Positions 1 through 54,265 of a stretch of 64,000 nt of DNA are shown here, one piece after another. The notes beneath the pieces were generated by a model, which saw only the letters and a program-made list of their open reading frames with translations, was not told the DNA's origin and did not search any database. The stretch lies in sequence record KJ019152.1; one strand, given 5' to 3'. Position 1 is the first letter of the stretch, and every line of letters begins with the position of its first letter. A program made the position numbers and the translations under genes.

Positions 1-267
1 GCCAATTGCTGGAATGCTATTCGAAATAATGATAAGGAATACTTTAAGATAGGAGTTGGTGTTTATAAAACTATCAACGCTGATAGGGAATACTATATCA
101 ATAGTCGTATTGAAACTGATAAGAATAGTGATATATCAGAGATGGATCAAGTGAAAGAAGCCCACTCCAAACACTTAAGTTATTTTATTGGATACAAATC
201 AGAAGTAACAGTTGAAGCTATCAGTAGTGATTGGAAATCTACCCTATACCGGGTTACTACCTGCTAG
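1..267 (+). CDS. 3' part of a hypothetical protein (truncated by window start)
   Basis: Frame 1 is open from base 1 to TAG at 265-267 (...[12 protein letters not shown]). Confidence 0.5.
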
Positions 268-299
268 GGTGTGTTATAATAGATGAAATGCATGTTGTG

Positions 300-1298
300 A
301 TGAAAGCTTTAATCTCTGGTATAACTGGGCAGGATGGATCCTATCTTGCTGAACTTCTACTGAAGAAGGGGTATGAAGTCCATGGTATTATTCGTAGAAC
401 CTCCTCGTTTAATACAGGAAGAATCGATCATATCTTCGATCAGTTACACCTCCACTACGGGGATTTGACTGACTCCCTGAACATAGTCTCTATCATTAAG
501 GAAGTAGAACCTGATGAGATCTACAACCTAGGGGCACAGAGTCATGTGAAAGTATCTTTCGAGGAACCTGAATATACAGCACAGACTGATGCTCTGGGAA
601 CCCTAAGAGTATTGGAGGCAGTTCGTCTCCTAGGTATGACAGATAGGGTCCGTATCTACCAGGCATCCACCAGTGAGTTGTATGGGTTAGTACAAGAAAC
701 ACCACAGAAAGAAACAACACCTTTCTACCCACGATCTCCATATGGCGTAGCTAAACTCTATGGATATTGGATTATAAAGAACTATCGTGAGAGTTATGGG
801 ATGCACGCCAGTAGTGGTATTCTATTCAACCATGAGTCACCACGACGGGGTGAGACTTTCGTAACCCGTAAGATTACTAGGGGACTATCCCGTATTAGTA
901 CAGGACTACAGGATTGTCTATACCTAGGTAATCTAAACTCAAGACGAGATTGGGGTCATGCTGAAGACTATGTGGAGGCTATGTGGTTGATGTTACAACA
1001 GGAAACTCCTGATGACTATGTGATTGCCACAGGTAAAGAGTATTCAGTGAAGGACTTTGTAGAGGCATCTGCTGAATACTTTGGTATGAAGATTGAGTGG
1101 CAGGGTGAAGGATTGGATGAAGTGGGTATAGATAGATTTACAAAGAAGGTTGTCGTTCGTGTGAGTGACAAATACTTCAGACCAGCAGAGGTTGAAACTC
1201 TCTGGGGTGATCCCACTAAGGCTAAAGAGGTATTGGGTTGGAAACCTAATCATACCTTTGCTTCCCTAGTAGAAGATATGTGTATCTACGGTCAGTAA
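300..1298 (+). CDS. gmd: GDP-mannose 4,6-dehydratase
   Basis: [53 protein letters not shown] at 300 (MKAL) preferred over the track start at 231. Confidence 0.95.
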
Positions 1299-1300
1299 TT

Positions 1301-2227
1301 ATGGAAAAAGGTGCAACGGTAGCAGTATTTGGTTCGGGTGGATTGGCTGGAAGTGCCATCACCAGGGCACTCAGGTGTTCTTTTGGGGGGTATAAGATTC
1401 TTACTCCTAGGAGTAAAGAACTAGACCTAAGAGAACAAGCAGATGTTCGTAGTTGGTTTAAGCATAACAAAGTTGATTATGTATTCTTAGCTGCTGCCTT
1501 AGTTGGTGGTATCATGGCTAACAAGACTAGAAAGGCAGAGTTCTTACATGACAATCTAATGATGCAGTGTAATGTAATTGACTCTGCATACTATAGTGGA
1601 GTAAAGAAACTCCTATTCTTAGGTACCTCTTGTATCTATCCAGCAGGAAGACACCATCCACTAGTGGAACATGAACTACTCACAGGACTATTAGAACCAA
1701 CCAATGACGCATACGCAATCGCAAAGATCGCAGGGATCAAACAATGTGACTTCTACCGAGAACAATATGGATTTGATGCTATCTCTATCATGCCTCCTAA
1801 TCTATATGGTCCTGGAGATAATTTCAATGAGGGATCAGGACATGTCCTCGCCTCATTGATGAATAGGTTTCACCTAGCGAAGGAAGCAGGTGCATCTAGA
1901 GTTGAATGTTGGGGTGATGGATCACCTATGAGAGAGTTTCTATATGTGGATGACTTAGCAGATGCTTCCTTATACTTTATGAATAGTTATAGTGAGTCTG
2001 GGCACATTAATACTGGGACTGGTAGGGATGTAACTATCAAACAACTAGCGGAGACTATTGCTGATGTAGTTGGATACAAAGGTGAGATAGGTTGGGATAC
2101 AACTAAACCCAACGGAAACCCAAGGAAACTACTTGACAGCAGTAGGGCAAACCTGTTAGGATGGGAACCCAAGGTTAAATTTGAAGACGGAATCAAACTC
2201 ACATACAACTGGTATCTAGCACAATGA
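1301..2227 (+). CDS. fcl: GDP-L-fucose synthase / ColC-like epimerase-reductase
   Basis: GSGGLAGSA, AAALVGGIMAN, FLGTSCIYP, YAIAKIAG, PPNLYGPGDNF, WGDGSPMREFLYVDDLADA. Confidence 0.9.
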   Translation: MEKGATVAVFGSGGLAGSAITRALRCSFGGYKILTPRSKELDLREQADVRSWFKHNKVDYVFLAAALVGGIMANKTRKAEFLHDNLMMQCNVIDSAYYSGVKKLLFLGTSCIYPAGRHHPLVEHELLTGLLEPTNDAYAIAKIAGIKQCDFYREQYGFDAISIMPPNLYGPGDNFNEGSGHVLASLMNRFHLAKEAGASRVECWGDGSPMREFLYVDDLADASLYFMNSYSESGHINTGTGRDVTIKQLAETIADVVGYKGEIGWDTTKPNGNPRKLLDSSRANLLGWEPKVKFEDGIKLTYNWYLAQ

Positions 2228-3417
2228 CAAAGATTACAAATGGATATACGTGGCCTCTTATGAAGGACACTGTGACCAAGAGAGATAGGTTGAGGATGGC
2301 AAAGTTTATCCTCACCAGTGATAGACTAACACAAGGTAAAGAAGTTCGTAAGTTTGAGGAGCAGTGGAGTGAGTGGCTTGGAGTTAAACATTCTCTTTTT
2401 GTTAGCAGTGGCAGTACCGCTAACCTACTTCTTGTGTCTGCTTGGAAGGAATTATACGAGATCCCAGACCAGTCGAAAGTAATTGTACCTGCTTGTACTT
2501 GGGTAACTAATGTTGCTCCTATCATCCAGTGTGGTTTGACTCCAATCTTTTGTGACATCAACTTAGAAGACTACTCCTTTGATCTGGATAAACTACAGGA
2601 TATTCGTGATGAATATCACGATGACATTAGAGGTATCTTTGTTACTCACCTCCTAGGATTTCCTGCTAATGTGGAAAAGTTTCGTGATGTTTTCCCCGAC
2701 GCTCATATTCTAGAAGATGTATGTGAGAGTCACGGAGCAGTCCTCCCTAGTGGTGATAAGGCGGGAACCTTTGATGTTGGTGGCACATTTAGTTTCTACT
2801 TTGGGCACCACATGACTACCATTGAAGGTGGTATGGTGAGTACTAATGATCCAGAACTCTATGATCTAATGAGAATGAAGCGTTCTCATGGGTTAGCGAG
2901 AGAATCACTATACTTTGAAACATACAAAGAGAAGTATCCTGATGTAAATCCACAGTTTCTCTTCGTTACTGAGGGATATAACTTCCGTAATACTGATCTA
3001 GCTGCTGTATTAGGACAGTCTCAACTGAAGAGACTAGACAGTATGATTGGGATTCGTAACAGGAACTATGAGTTATACCAACAATTACTAAAGAAACACG
3101 AACATGACCTTACACATGAGTATGGTGGTTCTTTCTATATCCCCTCCACACAGGGGGATGTAAGTAGTTTCTGTTTTCCATTTGTAGTTGATAATATGCA
3201 CTGCTATCTTAAGTTAAAAGAACTTCTAGAAGAATACTATGTTGAGTATCGACCTATTGTGAGTGGTAACCTCCTACGACAACCATTCTTGAGAGAATAT
3301 TCTGCTGAGTGTCCCAAGGCAGATATAGCCCATGAAAAGGGACTATATATTGGGAATAATCACTTTGTAGATGAGTCTAACTTTCACATGCTAGATGAGA
3401 TTTTGAGCCAACTTTGA
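2224..3417 (+). CDS. colD: DegT/DnrJ-family PLP/PMP enzyme, ColD-type GDP-4-keto-6-deoxymannose 3-dehydratase
   Basis: SSGSTANLL, LEDVCESHG, GTFSFYFGHHMTTIEGG with His at the usual Schiff-base Lys position; no Fe-S Cys cluster as in E1/RfbH. Confidence 0.72.
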   Translation: MTKITNGYTWPLMKDTVTKRDRLRMAKFILTSDRLTQGKEVRKFEEQWSEWLGVKHSLFVSSGSTANLLLVSAWKELYEIPDQSKVIVPACTWVTNVAPIIQCGLTPIFCDINLEDYSFDLDKLQDIRDEYHDDIRGIFVTHLLGFPANVEKFRDVFPDAHILEDVCESHGAVLPSGDKAGTFDVGGTFSFYFGHHMTTIEGGMVSTNDPELYDLMRMKRSHGLARESLYFETYKEKYPDVNPQFLFVTEGYNFRNTDLAAVLGQSQLKRLDSMIGIRNRNYELYQQLLKKHEHDLTHEYGGSFYIPSTQGDVSSFCFPFVVDNMHCYLKLKELLEEYYVEYRPIVSGNLLRQPFLREYSAECPKADIAHEKGLYIGNNHFVDESNFHMLDEILSQL

Positions 3418-3418
3418 T

Positions 3419-4213
3419 ATGACATTTTCATTTAATCATATGGGCAACTTGGGGCATCTGGGAAACCAGATGTTTCAGTATGCCGCACTCATTGGTATGG
3501 GGGCTAAGCATGGGAGGAGTATTTGTATCCCCCATAAACAAAGTTTTGGGCAATCATACTACCAGGATCTTCGTAGTAATATCTACGATGCTTTCAACCT
3601 CTCACCCAATGGTGTAGGTATCAGTAGGTTCCCCACAGTTCAGGAAGGTAGTTTCCACTTTGATGAAAACTTATTTGAGAACCCACCAGATGAGAACTGT
3701 AACCTCTATGGATTCTTCCAGAGTGAAAAGTGGTTCTCACATATCAAAGAAGGTATTAGGAAAGAGTTCACTCTAAAGGATGAGTACCGGGAAGTGGCAC
3801 AACTGATGAGAGAACAACTCTCTGGTCAGGTTGTTGCTATTCATGTTCGTAGAACTGACTACCTATCCAATCCAAACCACGGAGCATTGGGTTTAGATTA
3901 CTATGAGAAGGCACTGGAGTTGGTTCCTAATAACCTTACAGTAGTTGTATTCACTGATGATCCAGAGTGGGCTAAAGAACAACCACTCTTTCCAGATGAT
4001 AGGTTCTTTGTATCAGAGACAGACTGTCCCTATACAGACCTTGCTCTTATGAGTATGTGTGATTATCATATTATTGCCAACAGTTCATACTCTTGGTGGG
4101 GTGCATACTTATCTGATAGTAAGAAAGTAATTGCTCCTAAACAGTGGTTTGGGGAACCACTTAAAACAAATAACCTGAAAGATCTTTATTGTGATGGGTG
4201 GGTGAAACTATGA
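3419..4213 (+). CDS. GT11 alpha-1,2-fucosyl(colitosyl)transferase
   Basis: GHLGNQMFQYA, AIHVRRTDY, VFTDDPEW, IANSSYSWWGAYL. Confidence 0.9.
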   Translation: MTFSFNHMGNLGHLGNQMFQYAALIGMGAKHGRSICIPHKQSFGQSYYQDLRSNIYDAFNLSPNGVGISRFPTVQEGSFHFDENLFENPPDENCNLYGFFQSEKWFSHIKEGIRKEFTLKDEYREVAQLMREQLSGQVVAIHVRRTDYLSNPNHGALGLDYYEKALELVPNNLTVVVFTDDPEWAKEQPLFPDDRFFVSETDCPYTDLALMSMCDYHIIANSSYSWWGAYLSDSKKVIAPKQWFGEPLKTNNLKDLYCDGWVKL

Positions 4214-4833
4214 GTAACTTTGCAAGTGCTAAACAGTTTATCAAGAATGGTATTGATACACAACAGGAGTCTATCTCTGGTGGTGGCAGCACTATGGCTT
4301 CCACAGTTGCCTTCAGATACTTCCTACCAAAGTATATCAAACAGTATGGTATTGAGAGTATCTTAGACATTGGGTGTGGTGACTGGCATTGGATGTCTAC
4401 TATCAGAGAAGAGTTTCCTGATGTAGACTATGAGGGATGGGATGCCTCTGAGGATATGATTAATCCCATGACTGAGAAGTATGGAACAGAGAATACCAGG
4501 TTTGAGGTAAAGGATATCATTGATAACAAGTATCCCAAAGTGGATTTGGTTATCGCTCGTGATGTCCTATTCCACCTCAAAGAAGATTACCTAAAGAAGG
4601 TTCTCAAGAATATCAGTAAGGCAGGTGTGAAGTATCTACTAGCAACCACCTTTCCAGGTTTACCTAAGAACGAAGAACTCACTCCTAAGAAATATGACGG
4701 TTGGGGATTCAGACCAATCAATCTGGATATCGAGCCTTATAATATGAAAGATTATTGTATCAATGATTTCAAGGAAACGACAGCCCCTAACAGAGGATAC
4801 TATCGTCATGTCTATTTGTATGAGGTAAAATGA
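4210..4833 (+). CDS. class I SAM-dependent methyltransferase
   Basis: ILDIGCGD motif I; DLVIARDVLFHL. Confidence 0.8.
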   Translation: MSNFASAKQFIKNGIDTQQESISGGGSTMASTVAFRYFLPKYIKQYGIESILDIGCGDWHWMSTIREEFPDVDYEGWDASEDMINPMTEKYGTENTRFEVKDIIDNKYPKVDLVIARDVLFHLKEDYLKKVLKNISKAGVKYLLATTFPGLPKNEELTPKKYDGWGFRPINLDIEPYNMKDYCINDFKETTAPNRGYYRHVYLYEVK

Positions 4834-4982
4834 AGATCGAAATTGAACTCTCTAAAGATGTAGAATACAAAGGAGAGAAACTAGGTGAGTATATCTGGAA
4901 CCTAGAAGAGGGAATTAATCATGTTACTGGTTTTGGTGATTCACTTGAGGAATGTTTTAAGGAAATTGTGAGGTTTAGATGA
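4830..4982 (+). CDS. small hypothetical protein (50 aa)
   Basis: ATGA overlaps with both neighbours; MKIEIELSKDVEYKGEKLGEYIW... Confidence 0.55.
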   Translation: MKIEIELSKDVEYKGEKLGEYIWNLEEGINHVTGFGDSLEECFKEIVRFR

Positions 4983-5710
4983 AGAAAGTAGCTATTATCT
5001 TTATTGGAACAGGTAGATACCTAGAGTTTCTACCAAAGTATTATGAACAGGCAGAAGCAAACCTCTTCCCCGACAGACCCAAACACTACTATGTGTTTAC
5101 TGATGGTGACTTAGGTAATGAACTACCTGATAATGTAACTGTATACGAACAGGAACATCTCCAATGGCCATATATCACCCTCTATCGTTTCGGTATTATC
5201 CAGAAACACCTAGAGGAGATTGAGAAGGAGTGTGGTTTCCTACTCTTTATGGATGCTGATACACAGGTAGTATCCCCTGTATCGTTCGATGAAGTATTCA
5301 GGAAGGGAAAACCCTATACAGGTGTTCATCACCCCTGCCACGCCCTGAATATGCCACCACACAATGAGTTTCCTGGTAGTCTAGAAACTAATACAGCATC
5401 CAAGGCAGCATGTAAACCTGGTGATGACTTCTCTGTATATTGGCAAGGTTGTGTATGGGGTGGAAACATCAAGGGTGCTCGTAAGATTATTGATACTCTC
5501 CACCACAGAACTAAACAAGATGAGGAGAATGGAATCATTGCCAAGTGGCATGATGAAAGTCATATCAATAGATACTTCCTTGATAACAAAGATAAGGTGA
5601 ATACCCTATCACCTAGTTTCGCATACCCAGAGTCCTTCACTGAGTATATGGAAGACTATGAACCTAAGATTGTACACCTAGCAAAAGAGAATTCTAAGTA
5701 TCAGGTATGA
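4979..5710 (+). CDS. GT6 glycosyltransferase (ABO/alpha-Gal family)
   Basis: IFIGTGRY, FMDADTQV (DXD), YWQGCVWGG, AKWHDESHINRYF. Confidence 0.88.
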   Translation: MKKVAIIFIGTGRYLEFLPKYYEQAEANLFPDRPKHYYVFTDGDLGNELPDNVTVYEQEHLQWPYITLYRFGIIQKHLEEIEKECGFLLFMDADTQVVSPVSFDEVFRKGKPYTGVHHPCHALNMPPHNEFPGSLETNTASKAACKPGDDFSVYWQGCVWGGNIKGARKIIDTLHHRTKQDEENGIIAKWHDESHINRYFLDNKDKVNTLSPSFAYPESFTEYMEDYEPKIVHLAKENSKYQV

Positions 5711-6330
5711 GTTACTTCACAGATTATGACAACGAATTCACAGTATTCGAGGCACCAAAGAACGGGGGAACTACTCTCCGTCTTTGGATATACTACGCAG
5801 GAACAGGGGAGTTAGTAAAGTCAGCGGAGTCTGAATACTACGCTGGCACTGGAGAAACATACAAACAACTCCAAGAGTGGGGTTATGTGAATGGGGAATA
5901 CGAGAACCCCAAGACCCAGATGGTATGTATCAAGAGAGACCCTGTAGATAGGTTTGTAAGTGCCTTCTATGATAAGGTAATCAAAGAGGGAAGAATCAAA
6001 GTAACCATCGATGAGTTTCTCTCAAACTATGAAGAGATACTTGATAAGTCTACCCTCAAGATGAATGATGGTAAGACTAACTTCATGAAGTTTCACTTTG
6101 AGTCACAGACATATCACTTCGGTAAAGATAAAGATCTATATCATAAGGTCTTTGATATCTCAGAGGTTGGTACTGGTCTGAAGAAGTATCTGGAGAGTAA
6201 GTGGAATATAGAACTACCTGATGTCCATGCTAGAAATAGTGGTGGTGGTAGAAAGTTTGATCTCTCCAGGGGACAACTGAATAGGGTGAAGGAAATCTAC
6301 ACACAGGACTATTATAATGGGTGGTACTGA
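5707..6330 (+). CDS. sulfotransferase family 2 protein
   Basis: APKNGGTT (5'-PSB-like) and RDPVDRFVSAFYDK (3'-PB-like). Confidence 0.78.
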   Translation: MSYFTDYDNEFTVFEAPKNGGTTLRLWIYYAGTGELVKSAESEYYAGTGETYKQLQEWGYVNGEYENPKTQMVCIKRDPVDRFVSAFYDKVIKEGRIKVTIDEFLSNYEEILDKSTLKMNDGKTNFMKFHFESQTYHFGKDKDLYHKVFDISEVGTGLKKYLESKWNIELPDVHARNSGGGRKFDLSRGQLNRVKEIYTQDYYNGWY

Positions 6331-7102
6331 AGGATATATCCTGATAGGTATTGGTGATAGGTATCTACAGATGACAGAGAACCTCACTAAAACTCTAAAG
6401 AAACATGGAGATAATAGAGGATCCCTAACTATCACAAGATCGGATAATAGGGAACTCTATAGTGAGTGTAACACTGAGTTTGAGAGGAATGGAACTCTAC
6501 CTAAGATTACCTTAGATAGATACCTACCTTTTGATCACAATATATTCCTAGATGCTGATATGTTATGTGTAGGTGATACACAACATGTATGGGATCTATT
6601 CAGGAGTAGTGATCAGTTTGTTCAACAGGTAGGATGTTTGGGAAGAGATCCTAACTTCCACGCTCACCAGTATGAGAGTGAGTTGGGTTTTGAGATTCCT
6701 AGAGTCCATGGTGGTTGTATCTACATCAATAGAGAGAAACTAGACCCAGAGTTCTTTCCCTATATGAGAGAGTGTTTCCTAAACTATAAACAAATATTTC
6801 ATAATAGTGGTCTAACCTATAAGAATAGTAGACCAGACCAACCACTATACGCTCTAGCAAATGGTATGTGGGGATTCAAACCTGTGGATCTATACACTAA
6901 CCCTATCATGACTATTGTGAATGATAGCACCCCACCCCCACTAGATAGTGTGTTCTTCAATAAGAAGAGAGGTCCTAAGTTAGATACTCCTGTTCCTTTT
7001 GTTCATGTATTCCGTGGAGAAGAGGGTATGTCTAAGGGTTATACTAGAGGTGACCAGAAGATGTTGTTGTCCCATTATGATTACTACCTGAACTATGAAT
7101 AA
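6317..7102 (+). CDS. GT8-like glycosyltransferase
   Basis: NIFLDADML, HGGCIYIN, DQPLYAL; operon context. Confidence 0.6.
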   Translation: MGGTEGYILIGIGDRYLQMTENLTKTLKKHGDNRGSLTITRSDNRELYSECNTEFERNGTLPKITLDRYLPFDHNIFLDADMLCVGDTQHVWDLFRSSDQFVQQVGCLGRDPNFHAHQYESELGFEIPRVHGGCIYINREKLDPEFFPYMRECFLNYKQIFHNSGLTYKNSRPDQPLYALANGMWGFKPVDLYTNPIMTIVNDSTPPPLDSVFFNKKRGPKLDTPVPFVHVFRGEEGMSKGYTRGDQKMLLSHYDYYLNYE

Positions 7103-7883
7103 AACTATATGGATGTGTTGGTTCCAGGGTTGGGATAAGGCACCAGAGATTACAGAGAAGTGTTTAGAGTCCTGGAAACACTACAATAGTGATTGGGATA
7201 TTGTTCTACTAGATGAATCCAACTACAAGGATTACATCTCCATTGATAAAGAACTACCAGGACTGAAGACAAACTATATCTCACTGGGTGATATCCTCCG
7301 TCTCTTTCTACTAAAAGAGCATGGTGGAGTATGGGCAGATGCAACTATCTTCTGTAACAAACCAGTGGATTGGGTTTTGGATTATGAGGATTCTTTCATC
7401 TTCACCAGGAAGGATAAGATGATTGCCTCTTGGTTTGTTGCTGCTCAGAAAGATTCCCATGTTGTAGATGTATGGTATAATAAGATGTTAGAGTTCTGGA
7501 AGTATCGTATGGAAAATACAGATACTTTCGAGCAACAATATGGTTGGATACACGCTTTGTTCCGTCAGTCCTACGCTCAGGATAAGGGGTTCAGGGATAT
7601 TGTAGATAGTATGGATAAGATTGATTGCATGAGTGATGGTCAATCTAGAGGTAAGGGTCCGCACTTCTTTGCACCCTACAGTAAATACTTCTACAACCCT
7701 ATCAGTGACACGATAAAGAATCGTATAGACTCTAAAGTTGATCCACTATATAAGTTGTCTTACAAGGCAAACACAGACTGGAGAAGTCCAGAGAACAGGG
7801 GTATCCACCCAGCAGACCAAAAGATTATGTTGGAATATCCAACTAATAGTGAACTACATTATCTACTCAACACATTAAAATGA
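7095..7883 (+). CDS. capsular polysaccharide synthesis / GT32-like glycosyltransferase
   Basis: IWMCWFQGWDKAP, GDILRLFLLKEHGGVWADAT. Confidence 0.8.
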   Translation: MNKTIWMCWFQGWDKAPEITEKCLESWKHYNSDWDIVLLDESNYKDYISIDKELPGLKTNYISLGDILRLFLLKEHGGVWADATIFCNKPVDWVLDYEDSFIFTRKDKMIASWFVAAQKDSHVVDVWYNKMLEFWKYRMENTDTFEQQYGWIHALFRQSYAQDKGFRDIVDSMDKIDCMSDGQSRGKGPHFFAPYSKYFYNPISDTIKNRIDSKVDPLYKLSYKANTDWRSPENRGIHPADQKIMLEYPTNSELHYLLNTLK

Positions 7884-8785
7884 CAAATAAATCATTGGTT
7901 ACCGGTGGCGCGGGTTTCATCGGGTCACATATTGTGGACCGACTTATTACACTAGGACATCAAGTCGTAGTGATTGACAATGAATCCTCTGATGGTCATG
8001 ATGAATACCATTGGAACAGAAGCGGACAAGTACAAAACCATAAGGCAGACATTCGTGACTACGATGCAATCAAACACTTGTTTGGTGGAGTCAATAATGT
8101 TTTTCACCTTGCCGCTAAAGCATCAGTACAGGCGTCAGTAGATAACCCCCTACCAACTATTGCCACACAGGTAATGGGAACCGCCAATGTATTGGAGGCA
8201 GCACGACAATCTGGTGTGAGTAAGTTTGTATATTCCTCTACTAGTGCTTGTTATGGTAACAACAACCCCATTCCTAATGTAGAAACGATGAGAGAAGATC
8301 CTCTCAACGCCTATGCTATTGGTAAGTTATCTGGGGAACAACTAGTTCGTGCCTATCACTACCTCTATGGTATGAAGACGGTGGCATTCCGTTATACCAA
8401 TGTGTATGGGGAGAGGGCAAGACACGTAGGACACTACGCTCCTGCTGTTAGTAAGTTCCTAAAGATGAGAGCACAGGGAGAACCCCTAACTATCTTTGGT
8501 GATGGTGCCCAACGCCGGGACTTTATTCATGTATCTGATGTAGTCAACGCTAACTGCTGTATTACCTATGAGGAACTAGAGCAGTGGGGTGAGACCTATA
8601 ACATTGGTTATGGTAAGAACTGGAGTATCCAAGAGATCGCAGACTCTATCAGTCAGGAACAGATTCACCTATCTGCTCGTACTGGTGAGATGCGTGAGAC
8701 GCTTGCTGATATTGGGAAGGCAAAGGCAGAGTTGATGTGGAAACCAAAGACTGACATCATGGATTGGATTAGGGCACAACTCTGA
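7880..8785 (+). CDS. NAD-dependent nucleotide-sugar epimerase/dehydratase
   Basis: VTGGAGFIGSH, FHLAA, YAIGK (YxxxK), RYTNVYG, QRRDFIHVSDV. Confidence 0.9.
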   Translation: MTNKSLVTGGAGFIGSHIVDRLITLGHQVVVIDNESSDGHDEYHWNRSGQVQNHKADIRDYDAIKHLFGGVNNVFHLAAKASVQASVDNPLPTIATQVMGTANVLEAARQSGVSKFVYSSTSACYGNNNPIPNVETMREDPLNAYAIGKLSGEQLVRAYHYLYGMKTVAFRYTNVYGERARHVGHYAPAVSKFLKMRAQGEPLTIFGDGAQRRDFIHVSDVVNANCCITYEELEQWGETYNIGYGKNWSIQEIADSISQEQIHLSARTGEMRETLADIGKAKAELMWKPKTDIMDWIRAQL

Positions 8786-9402
8786 TGCCAGTATTTCAGA
8801 AGGACAACAAGAAAGTTCTATTCATCCATGTTCCCAAGACTGCAGGGAGTTCTGTGAATAAACTCTTTGTGAATAATGGATATGAAATGTCCTACTATTC
8901 TGAGAGTTCTAAAGATCTATACAATGGATTATGTGGACCACAACATCTGGACTCACTTCTATTGGAAGATGAGTTCCAAGATTTCTCTCAGTTTGATTAT
9001 ATCTTCTCTATCTTCAGAGACCCAGTAGACAGACATCTATCTGAGTTCACCTGGGCACCCTGGGGACTAATGGGTAGAAACATCTACACACCAGAAAGAT
9101 TTGATGAGTGGTGTCCTAAGATATTCAGGGCGTATCAGGACTCACCATATAGGATGGATAACCACATTAGACCTCAACATGAGTTCTATGTCAATGGATG
9201 TGATGTGTATGACTATGAAAATATCAATACACTCACAGAGAAACTATGTGATAAAATAGGTCTAGATAATAAAGAGATGCCATATGAAAGGTCTTCACGA
9301 TATGATAGTGAGGATTATGTCATCTATGAAGATACTTACAATTGTATTACTGAATTTTACAAAGGAGACTATCAATGGCAAAAGGATTCAGTCCTGTTGT
9401 GA
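8785..9402 (+). CDS. sulfotransferase family 2 protein
   Basis: FIHVPKTAGSS and FRDPVDRHLSEF. Confidence 0.8.
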   Translation: MPVFQKDNKKVLFIHVPKTAGSSVNKLFVNNGYEMSYYSESSKDLYNGLCGPQHLDSLLLEDEFQDFSQFDYIFSIFRDPVDRHLSEFTWAPWGLMGRNIYTPERFDEWCPKIFRAYQDSPYRMDNHIRPQHEFYVNGCDVYDYENINTLTEKLCDKIGLDNKEMPYERSSRYDSEDYVIYEDTYNCITEFYKGDYQWQKDSVLL

Positions 9403-10253
9403 CTAAGGATAAGAACAAGTCCCAGTTCAAACTACAGGGTGTTCCTAGGATTTACTACATCAGTTTAGATGATCATGCTCATCGTCAAGACTATATGGAG
9501 TCCCAGTTTGAAGACTGGGGCATCACTAACTTCGAAAGAATCTCTGCTCATGATGGTAGAGGTGATAATGATCTGAGTGATATTCTCAAAGGGTCTTATC
9601 CAAAGATGATGAGTTCTGGTGAGGTTGGTTGTGTAACCTCTCACCTAAAGGCACTAAAACACTGGTTAGATACTACAGAGGGTGAAGAGTTTCTCCTTAT
9701 GATGGAGGATGATTGTGATATCTCCACTGCTTCCCACTGGGGGTTCTCCTGGAGAGAGTTTGTTGGGAATATTCCATCCCATGTAGATTGTGTTCAGTTA
9801 GCAGTTATCAACCCATCAGAACTACATATCAAACTCCATATCAGGTTTGTGAATGATTTCTCCACTGCCTCATACCTAATCCGTAGATCACACGCAGAGA
9901 AGTTAGTTAGACTCTATTGTAGGGGTGATAAGTATAAACTTGATAGTGATATCAAACCCAGAGCAGTTGCTGATGATCTTATCTACAACTCTGGTGTGAC
10001 TCTTGCTATGCCTCTATTTGCCTTCAAGATTGCACTAGGTTCCAGTATCCATGATGTCCATATCAATACCTTCCACAAGAGTAGTCATGATGGTATCTGG
10101 GAGTTTTGGAAGAAAACAGCACCAACTATTGAGAACTGGAAACCATTCTTCAACTATGATGCCTATCTGGGAACCCTACCACCCAATGTTGTGGTTCAAC
10201 AATGGCAGCAAAAACAGGAATCCAAAGCAAAAGATTCAGGGGCTTCGCAATAG
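9375..10253 (+). CDS. GT25-family glycosyltransferase
   Basis: IYYISLDDHAHRQDYM, GEVGCVTSHLKAL, MEDDC. Confidence 0.8.
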   Translation: MAKGFSPVVTKDKNKSQFKLQGVPRIYYISLDDHAHRQDYMESQFEDWGITNFERISAHDGRGDNDLSDILKGSYPKMMSSGEVGCVTSHLKALKHWLDTTEGEEFLLMMEDDCDISTASHWGFSWREFVGNIPSHVDCVQLAVINPSELHIKLHIRFVNDFSTASYLIRRSHAEKLVRLYCRGDKYKLDSDIKPRAVADDLIYNSGVTLAMPLFAFKIALGSSIHDVHINTFHKSSHDGIWEFWKKTAPTIENWKPFFNYDAYLGTLPPNVVVQQWQQKQESKAKDSGASQ

Positions 10254-10297
10254 AACATATATATGTTATAATATTTACATTCACCCATGAGGTTATT

Positions 10298-10417
10298 ATG
10301 AAATTTGGTTTTACCCCCGAAGCAGAAATCCTAAACGCTCGTTTGGCAATGTTGGGATTCGTTATCGCCGTAGGCACTTACTTGACCACAGGTCAGATTA
10401 TTCCAGGAGTTCTTTGA
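10298..10417 (+). CDS. hli: high-light inducible protein
   Basis: [21 protein letters not shown], ExxNxRxAMxG motif. Confidence 0.92.
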
Positions 10418-10710
10418 TGGCGTTTTCTGTAACACTTAGATCACCTACTGGTGAAGATAAAGTTGTAACAGTGGAGGGAGATCAATACATCCTAGATGCC
10501 GCAGAGGAAGCGGGTGTAGATCTCCCATATTCATGTAGAGCTGGTGCTTGTTCATCCTGTGCAGGTAAGATTGTATCTGGAAAGGTGAATCAAGAAGACC
10601 AGTCATTCTTAGATGATGATCAGATCGAAGCAGGTTTCGCACTCTTATGTGTATCTTATGCCGAATCTGATTGTGTGATTGAGACGGAAAAAGAGGAAAC
10701 CCTTTACTGA
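10417..10710 (+). CDS. petF: plant-type [2Fe-2S] ferredoxin
   Basis: [29 protein letters not shown]. Confidence 0.95.
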
Positions 10711-10715
10711 GACTG

Positions 10716-10865
10716 ATGTCTAATCCAAACGCTCTATATGAAGATATGGAGAAACTGAATGCCCTCTACGAAGAACTTTGTTGGGGGCATAACGATGAAC
10801 TACAATTTTCCCATGACGGGGAGAGCATTATTATTACCAATAAAACCCAGGAGAAACAAAAATGA
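10716..10865 (+). CDS. small cyanophage hypothetical protein (49 aa)
   Basis: MSNPNALYEDMEKLNALYEELCW...; ATGA overlap with the next gene. Confidence 0.6.
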   Translation: MSNPNALYEDMEKLNALYEELCWGHNDELQFSHDGESIIITNKTQEKQK

Positions 10866-11071
10866 CAGTAACAACTGAAGACGGCGGACGCACAAACATG
10901 TACGCCACTGAACCCACTATGTTTATTGATCCTTCTTACACTGAGAAGTATGGTTTAGAAACACACGCTGAACGAGCTGAAACAGCAAACGGGCGTTGGG
11001 CAATGATTGGATTTGTTTCTGGTATTGTATCCTATGTTATTACTGGTAACTTCTTCTTTGGTGTTATCTAA
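10862..11071 (+). CDS. hli: high-light inducible protein (extended N-terminus)
   Basis: MTVTTEDGGRTNMYATEP...AETANGRWAMIGF. Confidence 0.9.
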   Translation: MTVTTEDGGRTNMYATEPTMFIDPSYTEKYGLETHAERAETANGRWAMIGFVSGIVSYVITGNFFFGVI

Positions 11072-11077
11072 TATTAG

Positions 11078-11105
11078 AAGGAGGGTTTGATACCCTCCTT
11101 TTTTT
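11078..11105 (+). terminator. intrinsic terminator
   Basis: AAGGAGGGT-ttgat-ACCCTCCTT followed by a T-run. Confidence 0.85.
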
Positions 11106-11152: not shown

Positions 11153-13444
11153 ATGGCATTTAAGATTAATGGCGTAGTACGCATTGATAATAGTGGCAAC
11201 GGTTTTCTGGGAATTGTAACCGCTACCGACGCTAATATCACAGGAGTTCTCACTGCCACTGAGGTGGATGCGAAAGTATCATCTAAGGCAATAACTGAAC
11301 AAACAGATGGAACCGTAGATGATGTAACTGGTGCAGATGAACTATTACTATTAGATGCCGAGACTGGTGGATTACTAAGAGTATCAATAGATGAGTTCGT
11401 GCAGGGTTCAGGCATTGGAACTCTAGTAACGGACTTTGATAACTTAACTGTTACTGGTATCACAACCGTTGCCACCCTCAAAGGTATTGGATCTAATAAC
11501 ATCAGTGTAGGGAGCACACTTTCCTTTGCTGATGGTACAGAGATCATCATGGGTGACTCTGGTGACTTCAGTATTCATCATGATGGTGACCATACTTACC
11601 TAGATGAGACGGGGCAGGGTAATCTAAAACTCCGTACAAATAACTTTAGAGTAACAAATATAGCAGAAACAAAACCAGCTATTACAGCACAGGTTACTTC
11701 TGGTGTTGAGTTGTATTTTGATGGTAATAAGAAGATAGAAACTACAAATACTGGTGTTCTTGTGAGTGGTATGCTCACTGCTGATAGATTAAGATCAGGT
11801 GATATTGCTGCTAGAAATGTAATCACACTGGGTATTACCACTATCCAAGATCATTTGGAAGTGAATGATAGTACTGGTTCTGGTACGGAATATAATCTTA
11901 ATGTTAAGACTAATGGTAGTTCTACCTTTGGTGTCTTAGGTAATGGAAATATTCTACTTGGAAACAGTTCCGGTGCTCCATTCATGGCGACGAATGATCA
12001 CCACGCAACTTCCAAGAAATATGTAGATGACGCCATCGCTGATGATCCTAGCGGTGCTGCGGCTTGGGGTACTGTTGCCGCAAACAACAGTGGTGGTGCT
12101 AGTAGTATTACTTTACTGGGTGGGATGAATGTAGCAAGTGTCACAGCTGGCACATCAAATGCAAAAGGAAATTTCGTGGTTACATTTGCCACTCCAATGC
12201 CTGATGCAAACTATTCAGTAACCGCTAGTTATAATAACGCTAATGTTAACACATATGGGGATATTAGTGTAGGTTCTAAAACAGCAAGTAGTTTTGAGGT
12301 TCAAACTTTTGAATCATCAAATCTGCCTGACTGGCAGGGGTTTGGATTTGTCGTCTTCGCAACCAATGCCCTCCCACCAACAGGCGGCACGGGAACAGAT
12401 GCCTGGGGTGATATTGCAGCAGATGTAACGATTAACGCTAGCTTTAACATCGCTTCAGTAACTAGAACTGCCACGGGCTTCTCTGCTGTGGTGTTTAATA
12501 CGCCGATGCCAAACGCTAATTACTCCGTTGTTGGTACTGTTGAGGGTAATAATGCAAGTCATAACTTAACAGTCAAAGATAAGACCGCTAACGGTTTTAC
12601 TGTAGTAACTGAGTCTGGGTATGACTATGCCAAGAATAATGACGCATACAGTTTCACCGTCAACGCCACCAACGCAACGCTACCTGAAACTATTACAACG
12701 GATCAGTTTACCTCTGCGTTTAATGCTCCTACCTTCAAAAACATTCTCATCAATGGAAATCTGACAATTAATCAACGTAATGTTAATATTACATCTGTTT
12801 CTGGCGGTGAATATGGTGAAGATCGTTGGAAAAAGACATTAGGTGGGATGACGCAGATTGTTGAAGATGGTAATTATCTACCAAGTTCTTCTTACACTTT
12901 ATCTGGAACAGGTATTACTACAACTACAGCAAACTCACCTGCTTCTGGTGACTGGGACATCTCAACAACCTTTGGTGATATTCCTGTTACTGCTCGTTCT
13001 ATCCAACTTGAATATGGCAACGTAGCCTCAGCGTTTGACTTGAGACCGGTTGGGGTGGAGCTGAGTTTGTGTCATCGTTATTTTTATAGAATAATAAGGT
13101 CCGTCAACAGCACTCCTTTTACTATTAAATCTAACAGTAACTCAAACGACATTCCCGCTGTAGGCTCGATCGAGTGTTCTTACAATGTAGTTTTTCCAGC
13201 CACAATGAGAACCCAACCTACTGGCTCAAATTACAGTAACAACGGAGCAAATAACTATTTGGCAATTCCAGGATATAGGGCTATTACTAACTCTTTTCTG
13301 GCAAGCGATGTAAGTTTTTCATACGCATCCTCTGAAGACGCAGTAATTTTAGTGGATACGACCTTAGGGAGCATCGGAGTAGTTCAAGGAGCTGCGTTCC
13401 CGCTAGAGGCGGCTTTTAGTTATGACATCGACGCCGAACTTTAA
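11153..13444 (+). CDS. tail/accessory fibre-like protein (763 aa)
   Basis: G/T/S-rich; two AWG...TPMP.ANYSV repeats; KNILINGNLTINQR domain; late promoter; chaperone-like ORF follows. Confidence 0.65.
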   Translation: MAFKINGVVRIDNSGNGFLGIVTATDANITGVLTATEVDAKVSSKAITEQTDGTVDDVTGADELLLLDAETGGLLRVSIDEFVQGSGIGTLVTDFDNLTVTGITTVATLKGIGSNNISVGSTLSFADGTEIIMGDSGDFSIHHDGDHTYLDETGQGNLKLRTNNFRVTNIAETKPAITAQVTSGVELYFDGNKKIETTNTGVLVSGMLTADRLRSGDIAARNVITLGITTIQDHLEVNDSTGSGTEYNLNVKTNGSSTFGVLGNGNILLGNSSGAPFMATNDHHATSKKYVDDAIADDPSGAAAWGTVAANNSGGASSITLLGGMNVASVTAGTSNAKGNFVVTFATPMPDANYSVTASYNNANVNTYGDISVGSKTASSFEVQTFESSNLPDWQGFGFVVFATNALPPTGGTGTDAWGDIAADVTINASFNIASVTRTATGFSAVVFNTPMPNANYSVVGTVEGNNASHNLTVKDKTANGFTVVTESGYDYAKNNDAYSFTVNATNATLPETITTDQFTSAFNAPTFKNILINGNLTINQRNVNITSVSGGEYGEDRWKKTLGGMTQIVEDGNYLPSSSYTLSGTGITTTTANSPASGDWDISTTFGDIPVTARSIQLEYGNVASAFDLRPVGVELSLCHRYFYRIIRSVNSTPFTIKSNSNSNDIPAVGSIECSYNVVFPATMRTQPTGSNYSNNGANNYLAIPGYRAITNSFLASDVSFSYASSEDAVILVDTTLGSIGVVQGAAFPLEAAFSYDIDAEL

Positions 13445-46261: not shown

Positions 46262-49200
46262 ATGGCATATTTACTTTCTAATGGGGGCGTTATTATTAAC
46301 GACTCCAGAGAAATCGTAAATGCTGGGGTTGTAACTGCTACTGCGTTCTTTGGGGACGGTTCTGGTTTATCTGGAATCGCAACCATTTCTGATGGGGGAA
46401 TCTCCATCGGCGACGCAAACATCACTGGAAACTTAAATGTTTCTGGTATTTCTACCGTAGAATTCTTAAACGCTTCTGACATTAATGTCGGCGGTGCTTT
46501 AACAGTCACAGGTGATCTATCTGTCGGTGGTGATTTATCTTTTGATGAGGTTTCTGGTAGAAACCTAAACATCACTGGTATTTCCACACTCGGAACAGTT
46601 AAGATTTCAAATGGCATTGTAACCGCCACTAGTGGCGTTGTTACATATTACGGTGATGGTAGCAATCTAACCGGCATTGACATCACAGATAGTGATGTAA
46701 GACTCAGAAACCTTTCGGTTACTGGTGTCTCTACATTCACAGGTGATGTATCTTTTGGAGCAAACGCTTCTCTAGTAGGCGACCTAACTTCTGGTCGTAA
46801 CGCAAACCTTTCAGGTATTGCGACAGTAAATGATATCTATATTGATAACTTACTTTATGATTCCAACAATAATGTTGGAGCAGCTGGTTCAATTCTTGTA
46901 ACCGCAGGTGGAAAGTTACAGTGGCTACCGCCCGATCAAGCGGGTATTGCTACAGTATTCCAACCAGGAAATACATTCTTTGTTTCTAAGAATGGTGATG
47001 ATAGTAGTGATGGTCTCTCCATGGAGAAATCATTTGCTACCATTTCCTACGCTCTGTCTCAGATTTCATCAGGGACAAACAACGTTCTCTTAATCACCGC
47101 TGGTGATTATGAAGAAGTATTCCCACTATCAGTTCCCGATGGACTGACTGTTAAGGGTGTTGGACAACGTGCGGTTCTAGTTAGACCCACTTCAGCTACA
47201 GAAACCAACGATGGTTTCCAACTTGGTAACGCATCCACAGTTGAAGATTTGACCATTGGTCAGATGTTTAAACCTCAAGGTGCTTCCAATAATAACTACG
47301 CTTTCACATATAGAAGTGGTGCTACCATTTCATCTCGTGGACCTTATGTTTCTAGAGTTACGGTTCTAAACAAAGGTAGCGTAACTTCTACCTCTGACCC
47401 ATTTGGATATGGTTCAGCTGATGCTTATCCAACGACTGCCCCTGGTGGTGCTGGTGTATTGGCTGATGGTAGTGTTCTTAACTCCGCCTCACTAGAAGCC
47501 TCATTCCTACTTAACGAAGTCACCACCTTCACTGCCGGTAACATCGGTATTGATATGGTCAACGGTGCTCGTGTTGAGTGGTTGAATGGTTTCTCCTACT
47601 TCGCATCCGAGGGTGTTAAAGGTAGAGCTGACCAGTCAACTGGTTTGTATGGTGCAGGTAAGACGAGACTAAGAGTTGAGAACGCCTCTGGTGGTCTAGT
47701 CAATGGTAATACCATTGAACTCTATGATATTGATGGCACGACTAGCCTTGCTAGTGGTACTATTGACGGCACCAGTGGTGCATACACGACCCTGACTACT
47801 GGTGGTACTGGTACCTTCGCTATTGCAGGAAGTCGTAAGGCGAAAGCTGCCTCATTCGTTGATACAGCCTCTCTATCTACAACACAAGCCAAATTCGGGA
47901 ATGCTTCACTAGATGTAACTGGTCAGTCTACTGATTGTATCAATGTTGATCCAAGCAGTGACTTCGGTTTCGGTACTGGTGACTTTACAGCTGAATTCTG
48001 GTTGTATAGAACATCAGCTACTGCTGGTGCTACTATTCTCGATATGAGAGATGCAGCTGATACTGATTCAGCTCTATCTATTAGAGAGAACACTAGTGAT
48101 GTTATTGAAGTTCTTGTCGGCAACTCTGTTGTTCTAACTTCATCCACAAGTGCTATTGGTAATGCCGCTTGGTATCACATTGCTGTTGCCCGTTTGGGTA
48201 GCACAATGGAACTATTCATTAATGGTGCCCAGGAAGCTTCAGCATCCAATTCATCTGACTTAGGTCTAAGCCAGTCACTCACCTTTGGTGCTGACTATGC
48301 TAACGCCAATGGTACTATTGCGTTCTTAGATGAACTCCGTATCGAGAAGGGTGCTGCTAAGTACACGAATCCGTTTACTCCTTCCACTGTACCCCTTGAG
48401 GGTGACCGTGGTACAGCTATCCTACTCCACTTTGATGGATCAAATGGAGCAACTGAAGCTCCTGATGATATTCAGATATTCCAGGATATCCGTATCAGTG
48501 GTGGTAACACAGCTGATAGACTATCACTTGCTGACTACAGTCAGTTTGGTGCTGAGTTGCGTTCCTCTGGTTGTGCTGTTGAGTATGGTAACAAAGGTGT
48601 CGTCGGAGACGGTGCTGGTGTTGCTCTAAGACTCATCGGTATTAACTTCAGTTTCGTAGGTGCCCTAGGTGATCTAACTAACGATCCAAACCTAGCCGTT
48701 CAGGCTAATGAAGTTACAGAAACCAACAATGCTGAGGTATCTTTCACCAGTATTGATCAAGGTGGTGACTTCCGTGTTGGTGAATCCTTCTATGTTAACC
48801 AGGAAACTGGTGATGTATCATTCAACAACACAACAACTGATCTAACCTCACTATCTAGTCTAACCATCACTGATGGTACTAACAACTCACTTATCACTCC
48901 TACCTCTGGTAGATTTGGTAATGTTCAGATCTCTGGACAGCAAGTTGCTTCTGTATCTGGTGACCTAGACCTAGTAACCGCTGGTGGTGGTGAAGTTAAC
49001 ATCTACGGTAATACTAACGTTGTTGGTATTCTAACCGCACAGGTTGTTGAGATCAACGCTATCCAGAAGGGTGATACTTCTATCGCTCTAGATGATACCG
49101 GTACTGATGGTACTATCCGGTTTAACACCGATGGTTCTGAGGCAGGTAGATTCACTAAGGATAACGACCTTGCAGTAACACACAACTTCCGCGTTGGTGG

Positions 49201-52668: not shown

Positions 52669-53343
52669 ATGTCTCAAATCAATTTCCCAAATATCCCATC
52701 AGATGGTGATGAGTTTTTGGCACCCAATGGTACAACTTACCAATATGATTCCGACACAGGTCAGTGGAAGATTCTATTAGGTCCTGGTGCCGATGGTCCC
52801 AAGGGTCCTATAGGTCCTGAAGGTGCTACTGGATCCACAGGTCCCGATGGTCCTACTGGTGCTACTGGAACGGATGCTACAAGAATAACTGGTGAGATTA
52901 TTGCATTTGGTGGAACTACTGTTCCATCTGGTTGGCTTGAATGTAATGGTCAAGCTGCTCCTAGTGCTCTTGCTGCTGTATTAGGTATATCTAATGTACC
53001 AGACTTACGTGGTGAGTTTATAAGAGGATTTGATAACGGTAGAGGTGTTGATAGTGGCCGTGCCATTCTCACCGCTCAGGGTGATGAATTTGAGAGTCAC
53101 ACACACATTCAAAATTCCCATAACCATACACAAAATCCACACACTCACCAAGCAAATTACACACCCTTAACCTATGTGGCGGGGCAACCACAAGCAAATG
53201 GATTGGTTACCGCGGTAACAGCTCTAACAAACATTTCCACAAACACAGCAACTAATATTGCAAACACAGCAACCAACCAAAGCACAGGTGGTACTGAAAC
53301 CCGTCCACGCAACATATCTCTGATGTACATCATTAAAACCTAA
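52669..53343 (+). CDS. collagen-like plus tail collar domain protein
   Basis: GXY run; GEIIAFGG...GWLECNG...PDLRGEFIRGFDNGRGVD...ETRPRNISLMYIIK. Confidence 0.85.
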   Translation: MSQINFPNIPSDGDEFLAPNGTTYQYDSDTGQWKILLGPGADGPKGPIGPEGATGSTGPDGPTGATGTDATRITGEIIAFGGTTVPSGWLECNGQAAPSALAAVLGISNVPDLRGEFIRGFDNGRGVDSGRAILTAQGDEFESHTHIQNSHNHTQNPHTHQANYTPLTYVAGQPQANGLVTAVTALTNISTNTATNIANTATNQSTGGTETRPRNISLMYIIKT

Positions 53344-53347
53344 ACCC

Positions 53348-53995
53348 ATGTCTCAAATTAATTTCCCAAATAGCCCATCCGATGGTGAAGAGTTTCTAGC
53401 ATCTAATGGAACTACGTATCGATACGATAGTTCTACGGGTCAGTGGAAGATTCTATCAGGTCCTGGTGTTCAGGGACCCGCTGGTAATACAGGTCCTACT
53501 GGATCTATTATTATGTGGGGAACTTCAACACTACCAGAGGGATATATCGAATGTAATGGTCAATCTACTTCTGGATATACAGCTTTAGCTGCGTTATATG
53601 GTTCCAATGTCCCAGATCTTCGTGGTGAGTTTGTAAGGGGTTGGGATAACGGTAAGGGTACTGATAGTGGTCGGGCTCTATTGGGTAGTCAAGGCGAATC
53701 GTTTAAAAGCCACACACACACTCAGAATTCACACAATCACAGTCAGAATTCACACAATCACACACAGAATCCCCACAAACACACGCAACAACTGGGTGGA
53801 ACTATTTCATCTGACCTTTTGCAATCCGGGAGCTATCGGATTGGTAACGCAAATTCTGCATCAGTTAGTAATACCACAGCAACCAATAAATCTACTACAG
53901 CAACCAATAATGCAGCCACAGCAACCAACCAAAGCACAGGTGATACTGAAACCCGTCCACGCAACATATCTTTGATGTATATTATTAAGACCTAG
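53348..53995 (+). CDS. tail collar domain protein (paralogue)
   Basis: Same MSQINFP N-module; PDLRGEFVRGWDNG; ETRPRNISLMYIIK. Confidence 0.85.
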   Translation: MSQINFPNSPSDGEEFLASNGTTYRYDSSTGQWKILSGPGVQGPAGNTGPTGSIIMWGTSTLPEGYIECNGQSTSGYTALAALYGSNVPDLRGEFVRGWDNGKGTDSGRALLGSQGESFKSHTHTQNSHNHSQNSHNHTQNPHKHTQQLGGTISSDLLQSGSYRIGNANSASVSNTTATNKSTTATNNAATATNQSTGDTETRPRNISLMYIIKT

Positions 53996-54031
53996 TGTGA
54001 TATAATAAATACACTGTAAGAATACTATATT

Positions 54032-54265
54032 ATGTACACCCTATACTCCAAACTAAACTGTTCTCATTGTAAAGCAATTGAGAATGTATTTGATCTAAAG
54101 AACATCCCATACACCAAGAAAACACTAGGTCTAGACTTCACTAAGGTGGAGTTTATGGAACAATTTGGTAGAACTACTTTCCCCAGAGTAGTCAGTAATG
54201 AAGGAGTGGTATTGGGTGGTGCTAGTGAAACTGTTAAAATCCTAAAAGAACAAGGTATCCTTTAA
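54032..54265 (+). CDS. glutaredoxin
   Basis: LYSKLNCSHC (CxxC); RTTFPRV cis-Pro motif; GG. Confidence 0.85.
   Translation: MYTLYSKLNCSHCKAIENVFDLKNIPYTKKTLGLDFTKVEFMEQFGRTTFPRVVSNEGVVLGGASETVKILKEQGIL

Follow-up and report, generated by a model that had tools for sequence, protein, structure and literature searches.

A predicted ColD-like 3-dehydratase in a candidate GDP-L-colitose cassette of the Synechococcus phage ACG-2014f

The Synechococcus phage ACG-2014f, a T4-like cyanomyovirus (Kyanoviridae, Atlauavirus) with a genome of ~221 kb, carries a cassette of four sugar genes at positions 300 to 4213 of the DNA analyzed here, a stretch of 64,000 nucleotides from the record KJ019152.1 that we call the window. 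Judged from its sequence, this cassette probably makes GDP-L-colitose, and GDP-L-fucose probably alongside it. Gene identities, the pattern of catalytic residues, phylogeny and gene linkage were observed here. The first 10.3 kb of the window are 100% identical to isolate Syn7803C25 (KJ019152.1), and 45 ACG-2014f records hold at least 80% of these 10.3 kb with an identity of 95 to 100%. When IMG/VR was scanned with the product of the third gene, a DegT-like protein, 206 viral stretches matched; the best 80 of these were analyzed, and all viral counts given per 80 loci refer to them. For the cellular comparison, 80 loci were fetched from a larger set that held 279 further matches. Reference ColD, ColC, WbgN, Gmd and Fcl were taken from E. 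coli O55:H7 CB9615, and three proteins from Vibrio and Marinomonas loci, which score 755 to 766 bits against the NCBIfam RfbH model (cut-off 423), served as true RfbH/E1 references.

The cassette starts with gmd (300 to 1298), which codes for a GDP-mannose 4,6-dehydratase (TIGR01472, 554.3 bits; cut-off 415) with 65% identity to E. coli Gmd proteins. Its TAA stop codon is followed after 2 nt by the ATG of the gene for the proposed terminal enzyme (1301 to 2227), a GDP-sugar epimerase/4-reductase of the Fcl family of short-chain dehydrogenases/reductases (SDR), as judged by its identity to E. coli Fcl and ColC and by its position in a tree. This fcl-like gene overlaps by 4 nt (ATGA) with the colD-like gene (2224 to 3417), whose DegT-like product is predicted from a PDB match (2gms), Foldseek and trees to be a ColD-type GDP-4-keto-6-deoxymannose 3-dehydratase dependent on pyridoxal or pyridoxamine phosphate (PLP/PMP). 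One nucleotide past the colD-like stop codon begins the ATG of a gene for a glycosyltransferase of family 11 (GT11; 3419 to 4213; PF01531, 3.3e-28), a predicted alpha-1,2-(colitosyl/fucosyl)transferase, which in turn shares an ATGA overlap with a methyltransferase gene. The E-values of the family matches of all four genes are far beyond chance, and the ratio of nonsynonymous to synonymous substitution rates (dN/dS), calculated against the diverged relative L094, is 0.04 to 0.25 across the cassette, with 0.25 for the colD-like gene, which is intact in 45 isolates. The four genes are a closely packed operon, probably with coupled translation, that heads a glycan-building island of ~10 kb. A preliminary description of this DNA, made from the letters alone, had placed the same four genes at 300 to 4213, and Pfam, NCBIfam and PDB matches bore out all of them, on the plus strand. 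It had also called the pathway likely complete; the four enzyme families are present, but this leaves out the supply of GDP-mannose, for which no manB/manC homologue was found in the window.

The DegT-like protein belongs to PF01041 (1.6e-59). In the PDB, the sequences closest to it are the four of E. coli O55 ColD, with E-values of 8e-51 (2gms) to 1.5e-49, followed by 9wvy, a putative NDP-4-keto-6-deoxyglucose 3-dehydratase (8e-35), E1 (7e-30) and the GDP-perosamine synthase PerA (1e-25). An AlphaFold2 model of the protein had a predicted local distance difference test score of 92 and a predicted template modeling (TM) score of 0.91. With this model, Foldseek retrieved ColD chains in the top 12 positions (E, 1e-32 to 7e-29; TM, 0.83 to 0.86), with GDP-perosamine synthase as the second-best class and E1 appearing first at rank 27. 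In the active-site motif FGHHMTTIEGG, encoded at 2800 to 2832, His195 takes the place of the Schiff-base Lys. Indeed, this residue, the first of the HH pair, aligns with His188 of ColD, the one altered in 3b8x and 2r0t (H188N and H188K crystal forms), so that the replacement of the catalytic Lys noticed at first sight is confirmed. The HH pair, with His for the Lys, was present in 97 of 97 relatives examined. The reading of the protein as an ordinary aminotransferase of sugars, such as a GDP-perosamine synthase, would agree with its RefSeq product name ("aminotransferase"), its membership in the DegT family and the second-best fold class, but is very improbable given the His in all 97 relatives, a substitution that in ColD defines the dehydratase chemistry (reviewed in PMC8987622).

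A second alternative is an E1/RfbH-type CDP-4-keto-6-deoxyglucose 3-dehydrase leading to a CDP-3,6-dideoxyhexose (abequose, paratose or tyvelose). This is what the names in UniRef, JGI and the GenBank record of the cyanophage S-CAM7 imply; RfbH is in fact the best-scoring NCBIfam model for the protein, and a ferredoxin gene lies in the transcription unit of the cassette. However, the RfbH score of 182.9 bits is far below the cut-off and below the score of E. coli ColD (262.8 bits), let alone that of true RfbH. The cysteines conserved in the three reference proteins at positions 193, 251, 253 and 261 have a spacing that fits the published Fe-S motif (C-X57-C-X1-C-X7-C); their counterparts in the phage protein are C167, R226, S228 and a gap. 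The first cysteine is kept in the phage protein and in ColD and the other three are absent from both, and thus the Fe-S cysteines are missing just as the preliminary description had stated. Furthermore, Pfam and NCBIfam scans revealed no CDP-glucose 4,6-dehydratase, cytidylyltransferase or E3 reductase in the island, the DegT-like gene has gmd as its neighbor, and a tree puts E1 outside the clade of ColD plus phage proteins (100/95). An E1-type enzyme thus has hardly any probability left. A different Fe-S site made up of C91, C110, C167 and C317 was considered and rejected, since C91 and C317 are conserved in just 14 to 15 of 20 clade members. Since the [2Fe-2S] cysteine motif is lacking, the predicted 3-dehydratase would not need a reductase partner. 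Sequence, fold, cysteine pattern and trees agree with the initial assignment and support a ColD-type, His-bearing, Fe-S-free 3-dehydratase, as opposed to an aminotransferase or E1.

The colD-like gene has a mosaic structure: its product is 82% identical to the L094 copy, whereas the products of the flanking genes are 94 to 98% identical. The nucleotide identity to L094 falls to 56 to 77% at 2624 to 2773 and 3074 to 3223, and the copy in the window has an insertion of 8 residues relative to L094.

The main tree of the DegT-like proteins had 50 rows; the outgroup was formed by ArnB and WecE, which are of the Lys type. E1 diverged first (support, 100/99), and all other His-type, Fe-S-free proteins grouped into a single clade (100/95). 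Two branches make up this clade: classic ColD (100/95), with E. coli ColD, the lineage of the GDP-heptose 3-dehydratase of C. jejuni and a Prochlorococcus single-cell genome, and a sister clade (99/96), which is rich in viral sequences and includes the phage protein. Its subclade (98/94) consists of viral sequences, and the nearest chromosomal relatives, with 49 to 52% identity, are found in genomes of sponge symbionts, Thermodesulfobacteriota, Legionellales and Halieaceae. A grouping with ColD, and not with E1 or PerA, the check named in the preliminary description, was therefore recovered, but the protein stands next to the characterized ColD clade and not within it.

Among the 80 cellular loci, the sole picocyanobacterial homologue is that of the Prochlorococcus single-cell genome (L085, 5843 to 9188). 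It is part of a classic gmd-colC-colD trio with a ColD 59% identical to that of E. coli and is therefore of the classic type, whereas the phages have the sister-clade type. In three other bacterial loci, from Vibrio ouci (L052, 5875 to 13379) and two Marinomonas species (L054 and L072), ColD and a true RfbH/E1 are encoded ~3 to 3.3 kb apart, which places two separate 3,6-dideoxyhexose routes in one cluster.

A GDP sugar as the substrate of the DegT-like protein is indicated by the linkage of its gene to gmd across viral loci. gmd was present in 68 of 80 viral loci and, where the upstream flank was long enough, was directly upstream of the colD-like gene in 51 of 70; in the window it is two genes upstream. 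The order gmd-fcl-colD-like was found in 39 viral loci, and a ManC-like gene adjoins the cassette in several. A 341-kb cyanophage-like contig with 60% identity keeps the order of gmd, fcl, colD-like, GT11 and GT6 through GT25. A contig assigned to a Crocinitomicaceae metagenome-assembled genome (L011, 297 to 7146) has gmd, colD-like and fcl-like genes, the latter two in the reverse order to that in the phage, followed by genes for GT47-like, GT25 and GT10 (alpha-1,3-fucosyltransferase-type) enzymes; its gmd is 79% identical to phage gmd, and therefore this contig may be viral.

Even with a GDP substrate, the final sugar could be one other than colitose, either because a different reductase or stereochemistry leads to another GDP-3,6-dideoxy or deoxy sugar or because the 4-keto-3,6-dideoxy intermediate enters another branch and fucose is all that the Fcl-like enzyme makes. 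Indeed, in ~20 viral loci (such as L133 and L120, at ~5970 to 9265), gmd and the colD-like gene are followed by a gene for a 355-amino-acid SDR with 26% identity to Fcl, with no Fcl-type gene and no GT11. The probable product of these loci is another sugar of the GDP-3,6-dideoxy type. In C. jejuni, moreover, ColD homologues feed four stereoisomers of 3,6-dideoxyheptose, depending on the reductase (PMC10440746), and the Fcl-like enzyme of the phage is outside the ColC clade. In the island of ACG-2014f, however, the Fcl-type enzyme is the only reductase of the GDP-sugar type and its gene overlaps the start codon of the colD-like gene. The second SDR (7880 to 8785) was considered as a 4-reductase and rejected, since its best matches are UDP-hexose 4-epimerases of the GalE type. 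With the epimerase residues of Fcl kept and a GT11 gene that co-occurs with the Fcl-type gene, a sugar other than colitose is rather unlikely for this cassette. A GDP-heptose substrate as in C. jejuni is also unlikely, since gmd passes the cut-off of the Gmd equivalog and no heptose genes were seen.

The reductase that would complete GDP-L-colitose is of the Fcl type. Its best PDB match is the GDP-fucose synthetase of E. coli (1.5e-91), and the NCBIfam Fcl model NF047922 gave 419.7 bits (cut-off 500), compared to 304.4 bits for ColC. With E. coli Fcl the enzyme shares 49% identity, compared to 39% with E. coli O55 ColC, and Fcl and ColC share 39% with each other. In the tree of the Fcl family, the neighbors of classic ColD genes group on a long branch as a ColC clade (26 rows; support, 100). 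The phage enzyme is not part of this clade and falls among viral sequences that form a clade on the side of Fcl. The preliminary description had spoken of an Fcl/ColC-like gene; an Fcl-family SDR is indeed encoded there, but identity with ColC did not hold up. Of the Fcl residues, S108, C109, Y136, K140 and H179 do not vary, and Thr takes the place of S107 in the phage enzyme. C109 and H179 form the acid/base pair of the epimerization, and since the epimerase residues are kept, the L-xylo (colitose) configuration is predicted. Colitose is 3-deoxy-L-fucose; therefore, the same C5 epimerization and C4 reduction acting on the ColD product would give GDP-L-colitose. Fcl-type partners outside the ColC clade also adjoin ColD-type genes in lineages as unrelated as Clostridium, bacteria of the candidate phyla radiation, Campylobacter and sponge symbionts; this recurrence supports colitose synthesis by Fcl-type enzymes, short of proof. 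When viral sequences were scanned with the Fcl-like protein alone, only 34 loci came up, with few comparators among them. Of the viral Fcl proteins encoded with no 3-dehydratase gene next door, the nearest are 57% and 52% identical to the phage reductase.

The last gene of the cassette codes for a GT11 (PF01531, 99.2 bits; cut-off 23.9) that shares 32% identity with WbgN and aligns with it at the HxRRxD and SWWGA motifs; a PDB sequence search gave only spurious matches to tetratricopeptide repeats. That GT11 includes a colitosyltransferase, WbgN, as stated at the outset, was confirmed by a 2025 study in which WbgN and human FUT2 both used GDP-L-colitose and GDP-L-fucose and the donor supply dictated the glycan (PMC11987014). 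In the 52 viral loci with complete flanks, the Fcl-type gene and GT11 were found together in 23, the Fcl-type gene only in 2, GT11 only in 1 and neither in 26 (Fisher's exact test, P = 3e-11, with loci that are not independent). GT11 genes are also present in seven classic bacterial ColD loci.

Several points weigh against colitose as the product. The DegT-like protein is just 32% identical to E. coli ColD. Of 13 ColD landmark residues for cofactor and substrate, 12 (G56, S57, W88, D159, E162, S183, H188, R219, F240, N248, E329 and R331) are conserved in the phage protein, but ColD Ser187 is replaced by Gly throughout the phage clade. We found no characterized member of the sister clade to which the phage enzyme belongs in the tree, and some of its cellular members adjoin other SDRs or radical-SAM genes; with neighbors that vary across the wider clade, the substrate may vary too, and the assignment of a GDP sugar is strongest for the phage subclade. 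A position of the reductase inside the ColC clade was rejected by the approximately unbiased test (P = 0.0003), although the group was named after the tree had been seen. Two viral Fcl proteins encoded without a nearby 3-dehydratase gene (L183, next to gmd, and L185) nest in the clade of the phage reductase. The lineage therefore works elsewhere as an ordinary GDP-fucose synthase, and GDP-fucose is probably made here too; that the phage reductase accepts the 3-deoxy substrate is an assumption. The GT11, by analogy with its characterized relatives, does not discriminate colitose from fucose.

If the DegT-like protein were inactive or unrelated, Gmd, Fcl and a GT11 fucosyltransferase would constitute a pathway for GDP-L-fucose only. 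The SDR is nearer to Fcl than to ColC, viral gmd-fcl pairs without a DegT gene do occur, and GT6 enzymes, one of which is encoded in the island, classically need a Fuc-alpha-1,2-Gal acceptor. Also, gmd, fcl and an alpha-1,2-fucosyltransferase but no dehydratase were annotated in cyanophage S-SCSM1 (PMC9602691). Such an idle DegT-like protein is nevertheless decidedly unlikely: its gene is under purifying selection (dN/dS, 0.25) and intact in the 45 isolates, its start and stop codons overlap within the operon, it recurs with gmd (68 of 80 viral loci), and its product keeps the catalytic landmarks of ColD.

For synthesis of GDP-L-colitose by the cassette, we propose the following sequence of reactions. 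Gmd would convert GDP-mannose of the host to GDP-4-keto-6-deoxy-D-mannose. The DegT-like enzyme would bind this intermediate as a PMP Schiff base at C4, His195 would take a proton and the 3-OH would leave; hydrolysis would free GDP-4-keto-3,6-dideoxy-D-mannose, and glutamate would regenerate PMP, with no involvement of an Fe-S cluster or a reductase partner. The Fcl-type SDR would then epimerize C5 and reduce C4 to yield GDP-L-colitose, and the same enzyme would probably convert the undehydrated intermediate to GDP-L-fucose. GT11 would transfer the L-sugar supplied into an alpha-1,2 linkage, presumably onto galactose, and GT6, GT25, the Caps_synth-type transferase, the methyltransferase and the two sulfotransferase-like proteins would elaborate the glycan. 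The substrates, the products, the ratio of colitose to fucose and the acceptor, a glycan of the host surface or the virion, are those that we infer.

The colitose genes of E. coli O55:H7 (gmd, colC/wbdJ, colD/wbdK and wbgN) represent the same four enzyme families. In both clusters, the reductase gene immediately precedes the dehydratase gene and overlaps it by 4 nt, the dehydratase has His for Lys and no Fe-S cysteines, and a GT11 gene is present. In contrast, the phage dehydratase belongs to the sister clade, the phage reductase is Fcl type and not ColC type, and manB/manC, wzx and wzy are all missing from the phage island; the phage cassette lies in a lytic cyanophage, next to GT6, sulfotransferase-like and methyltransferase genes. 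S-CAM7 (KU686212) has the same gene order as ACG-2014f, with gmd, "GDP-L-fucose synthetase," the 3-dehydrase and GT11, followed by GT25 and a tail fiber gene, and its dehydratase is 65% identical to the ACG-2014f protein. It differs in the annotation of this enzyme as a CDP-glucose-type dehydrase, the presence of an adenylylsulfate kinase and the absence of GT6. E1/RfbH has the DegT fold and the His-His motif in common with the phage protein, as well as C3 deoxygenation, which is predicted for the phage, but has a [2Fe-2S] cluster, an E3 reductase and a CDP substrate, whereas the phage protein has no cysteine motif and branches apart. Chlorovirus PBCV-1 also has a virus-encoded GDP-fucose pathway and is not known to encode a 3-dehydratase. 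In C. jejuni HS:5/HS:11, a ColD-family PLP 3-dehydratase acts after a GDP-sugar 4,6-dehydratase and the Fcl-family neighbors are outside the ColC clade, both as in the phage; however, this pathway starts from a heptose and has two distinct enzymes for epimerization and reduction, and the dehydratase is in the classic clade with 62 to 67% identity to ColD (PMC10440746). Cyanophage S-SCSM1 resembles ACG-2014f in its viral gmd, Fcl-type gene and fucosyltransferases, but a 3-dehydratase was not reported (PMC9602691).

The island continues from the cassette to ~10.25 kb, with all genes on the plus strand. The S-adenosylmethionine (SAM)-dependent methyltransferase gene that overlaps GT11 (4210 to 4833) is followed by genes for a GT6 of the ABO-transferase family (4979 to 5710; PF03414), a sulfotransferase-like open reading frame (ORF; 5707 to 6330; PF03567, 8.7e-7), an ORF without a family match in Pfam and NCBIfam (6317 to 7102), a Caps_synth/DXD glycosyltransferase (7095 to 7883; PF05704, 6e-41), the GalE-like UDP-hexose 4-epimerase-type SDR (7880 to 8785; PDB matches to UDP-glucose 4-epimerases and WbpP/WbgU), a second sulfotransferase-like ORF (8785 to 9402; PF03567, 5.8e-8) and a GT25 (9375 to 10253; PF01755). 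No flippase, polymerase or priming transferase is encoded in the island. The best PDB match of the GT6 is BoGT6a of Bacteroides ovatus (2e-27), followed by the human ABO transferases. GT11 and GT6, the families responsible for the H antigen and subsequently for the A/B blood group antigens, are ~770 nt apart, with the methyltransferase gene and a small ORF in between, and the pair recurs in ~15 of the 80 fetched viral loci. The methyltransferase and the two sulfotransferase-like ORFs, together with the adenylylsulfate kinase of S-CAM7 (L205, 9747 to 10316), suggest a methylated and sulfated glycan.

The transcription unit of the island is closed by a terminator-like hairpin at 11076 to 11102 on the plus strand (11 pairs and a T run). 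Directly past this hairpin, at 11113 on the same strand, is a T4-late-type TATAAATA, ahead of a tail fiber gene (11153 to 13444). TATAAATA is absent from 1 to 11100 and hence from the island; therefore, the island with its hli and ferredoxin genes looks like a separate, non-late transcription unit, which hints at non-late expression of the sugar genes. We claim no promoter, since a sigma-70 scan found 28 sites, no excess over the 32.5 in shuffled sequence.

A second small sugar island of low GC content (37%) is located at 54000 to 58100, just past two ORFs with tail-collar domains (52669 to 53995). It holds genes for a DUF285 protein (55299 to 56453), a GT2 (56435 to 57070) and another SDR (57067 to 58059). 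An ORF of 1,956 amino acids (46262 to 52132) is upstream of the tail-collar genes.

The four cassette genes have been named in different ways. In RefSeq they are, in order, "nucleotide-sugar epimerase," "nucleotide-sugar epimerase," "aminotransferase" and "glycosyltransferase"; in GenBank they are "GDP-D-mannose 4,6-dehydratase," "NAD-dependent epimerase/dehydratase," "hypothetical protein" and "glycosyltransferase family 11." The preliminary description expected routine annotation to yield an aminotransferase, which is true of the RefSeq label; the S-CAM7 record, with a "putative CDP-4-keto-6-deoxy-D-glucose-3-dehydrase" beside the "GDP-L-fucose synthetase," and the similar names in UniRef and JGI already specify a 3-dehydrase, with a CDP substrate. 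The nature of the enzyme has thus been noticed in databases, with the wrong nucleotide. Pathways of Gmd plus Fcl have been annotated in cyanophages before (PMC9602691). In the part of the literature covered, we found no report of a virus-encoded 3,6-dideoxyhexose pathway or of a link between colitose and cyanophages, and no publication on the dehydratase gene of S-CAM7 or ACG-2014f. What is new here, on sequence grounds, is the combination of an enzyme from the sister clade of ColD with an Fcl-type reductase, widespread in marine viruses.

A broader proposal, which we make tentatively and rate slightly below an even chance, is that a large sister family of ColD, encoded on at least 206 IMG/VR contigs, exists in marine phages and makes GDP-3,6-dideoxyhexoses with gmd and interchangeable reductases, the product being colitose if the partner is Fcl type. 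It would be the first virus-encoded pathway to 3,6-dideoxyhexoses, which are known as sugars of bacterial O antigens, and the sugar would sit at the end of a methylated and sulfated, blood-group-like glycan (GT11 plus GT6) on infected cells or virions. If this is true, the inconsistent names "aminotransferase," "hypothetical protein" and "CDP-...-3-dehydrase" would be corrected, a function would be found for the sister clade of ColD, and Fcl-type enzymes would act as colitose synthases. Abundant cyanophages would then rewire the GDP-mannose of their hosts into a rare sugar during infection, with a bearing on phage adsorption, superinfection exclusion and grazing.

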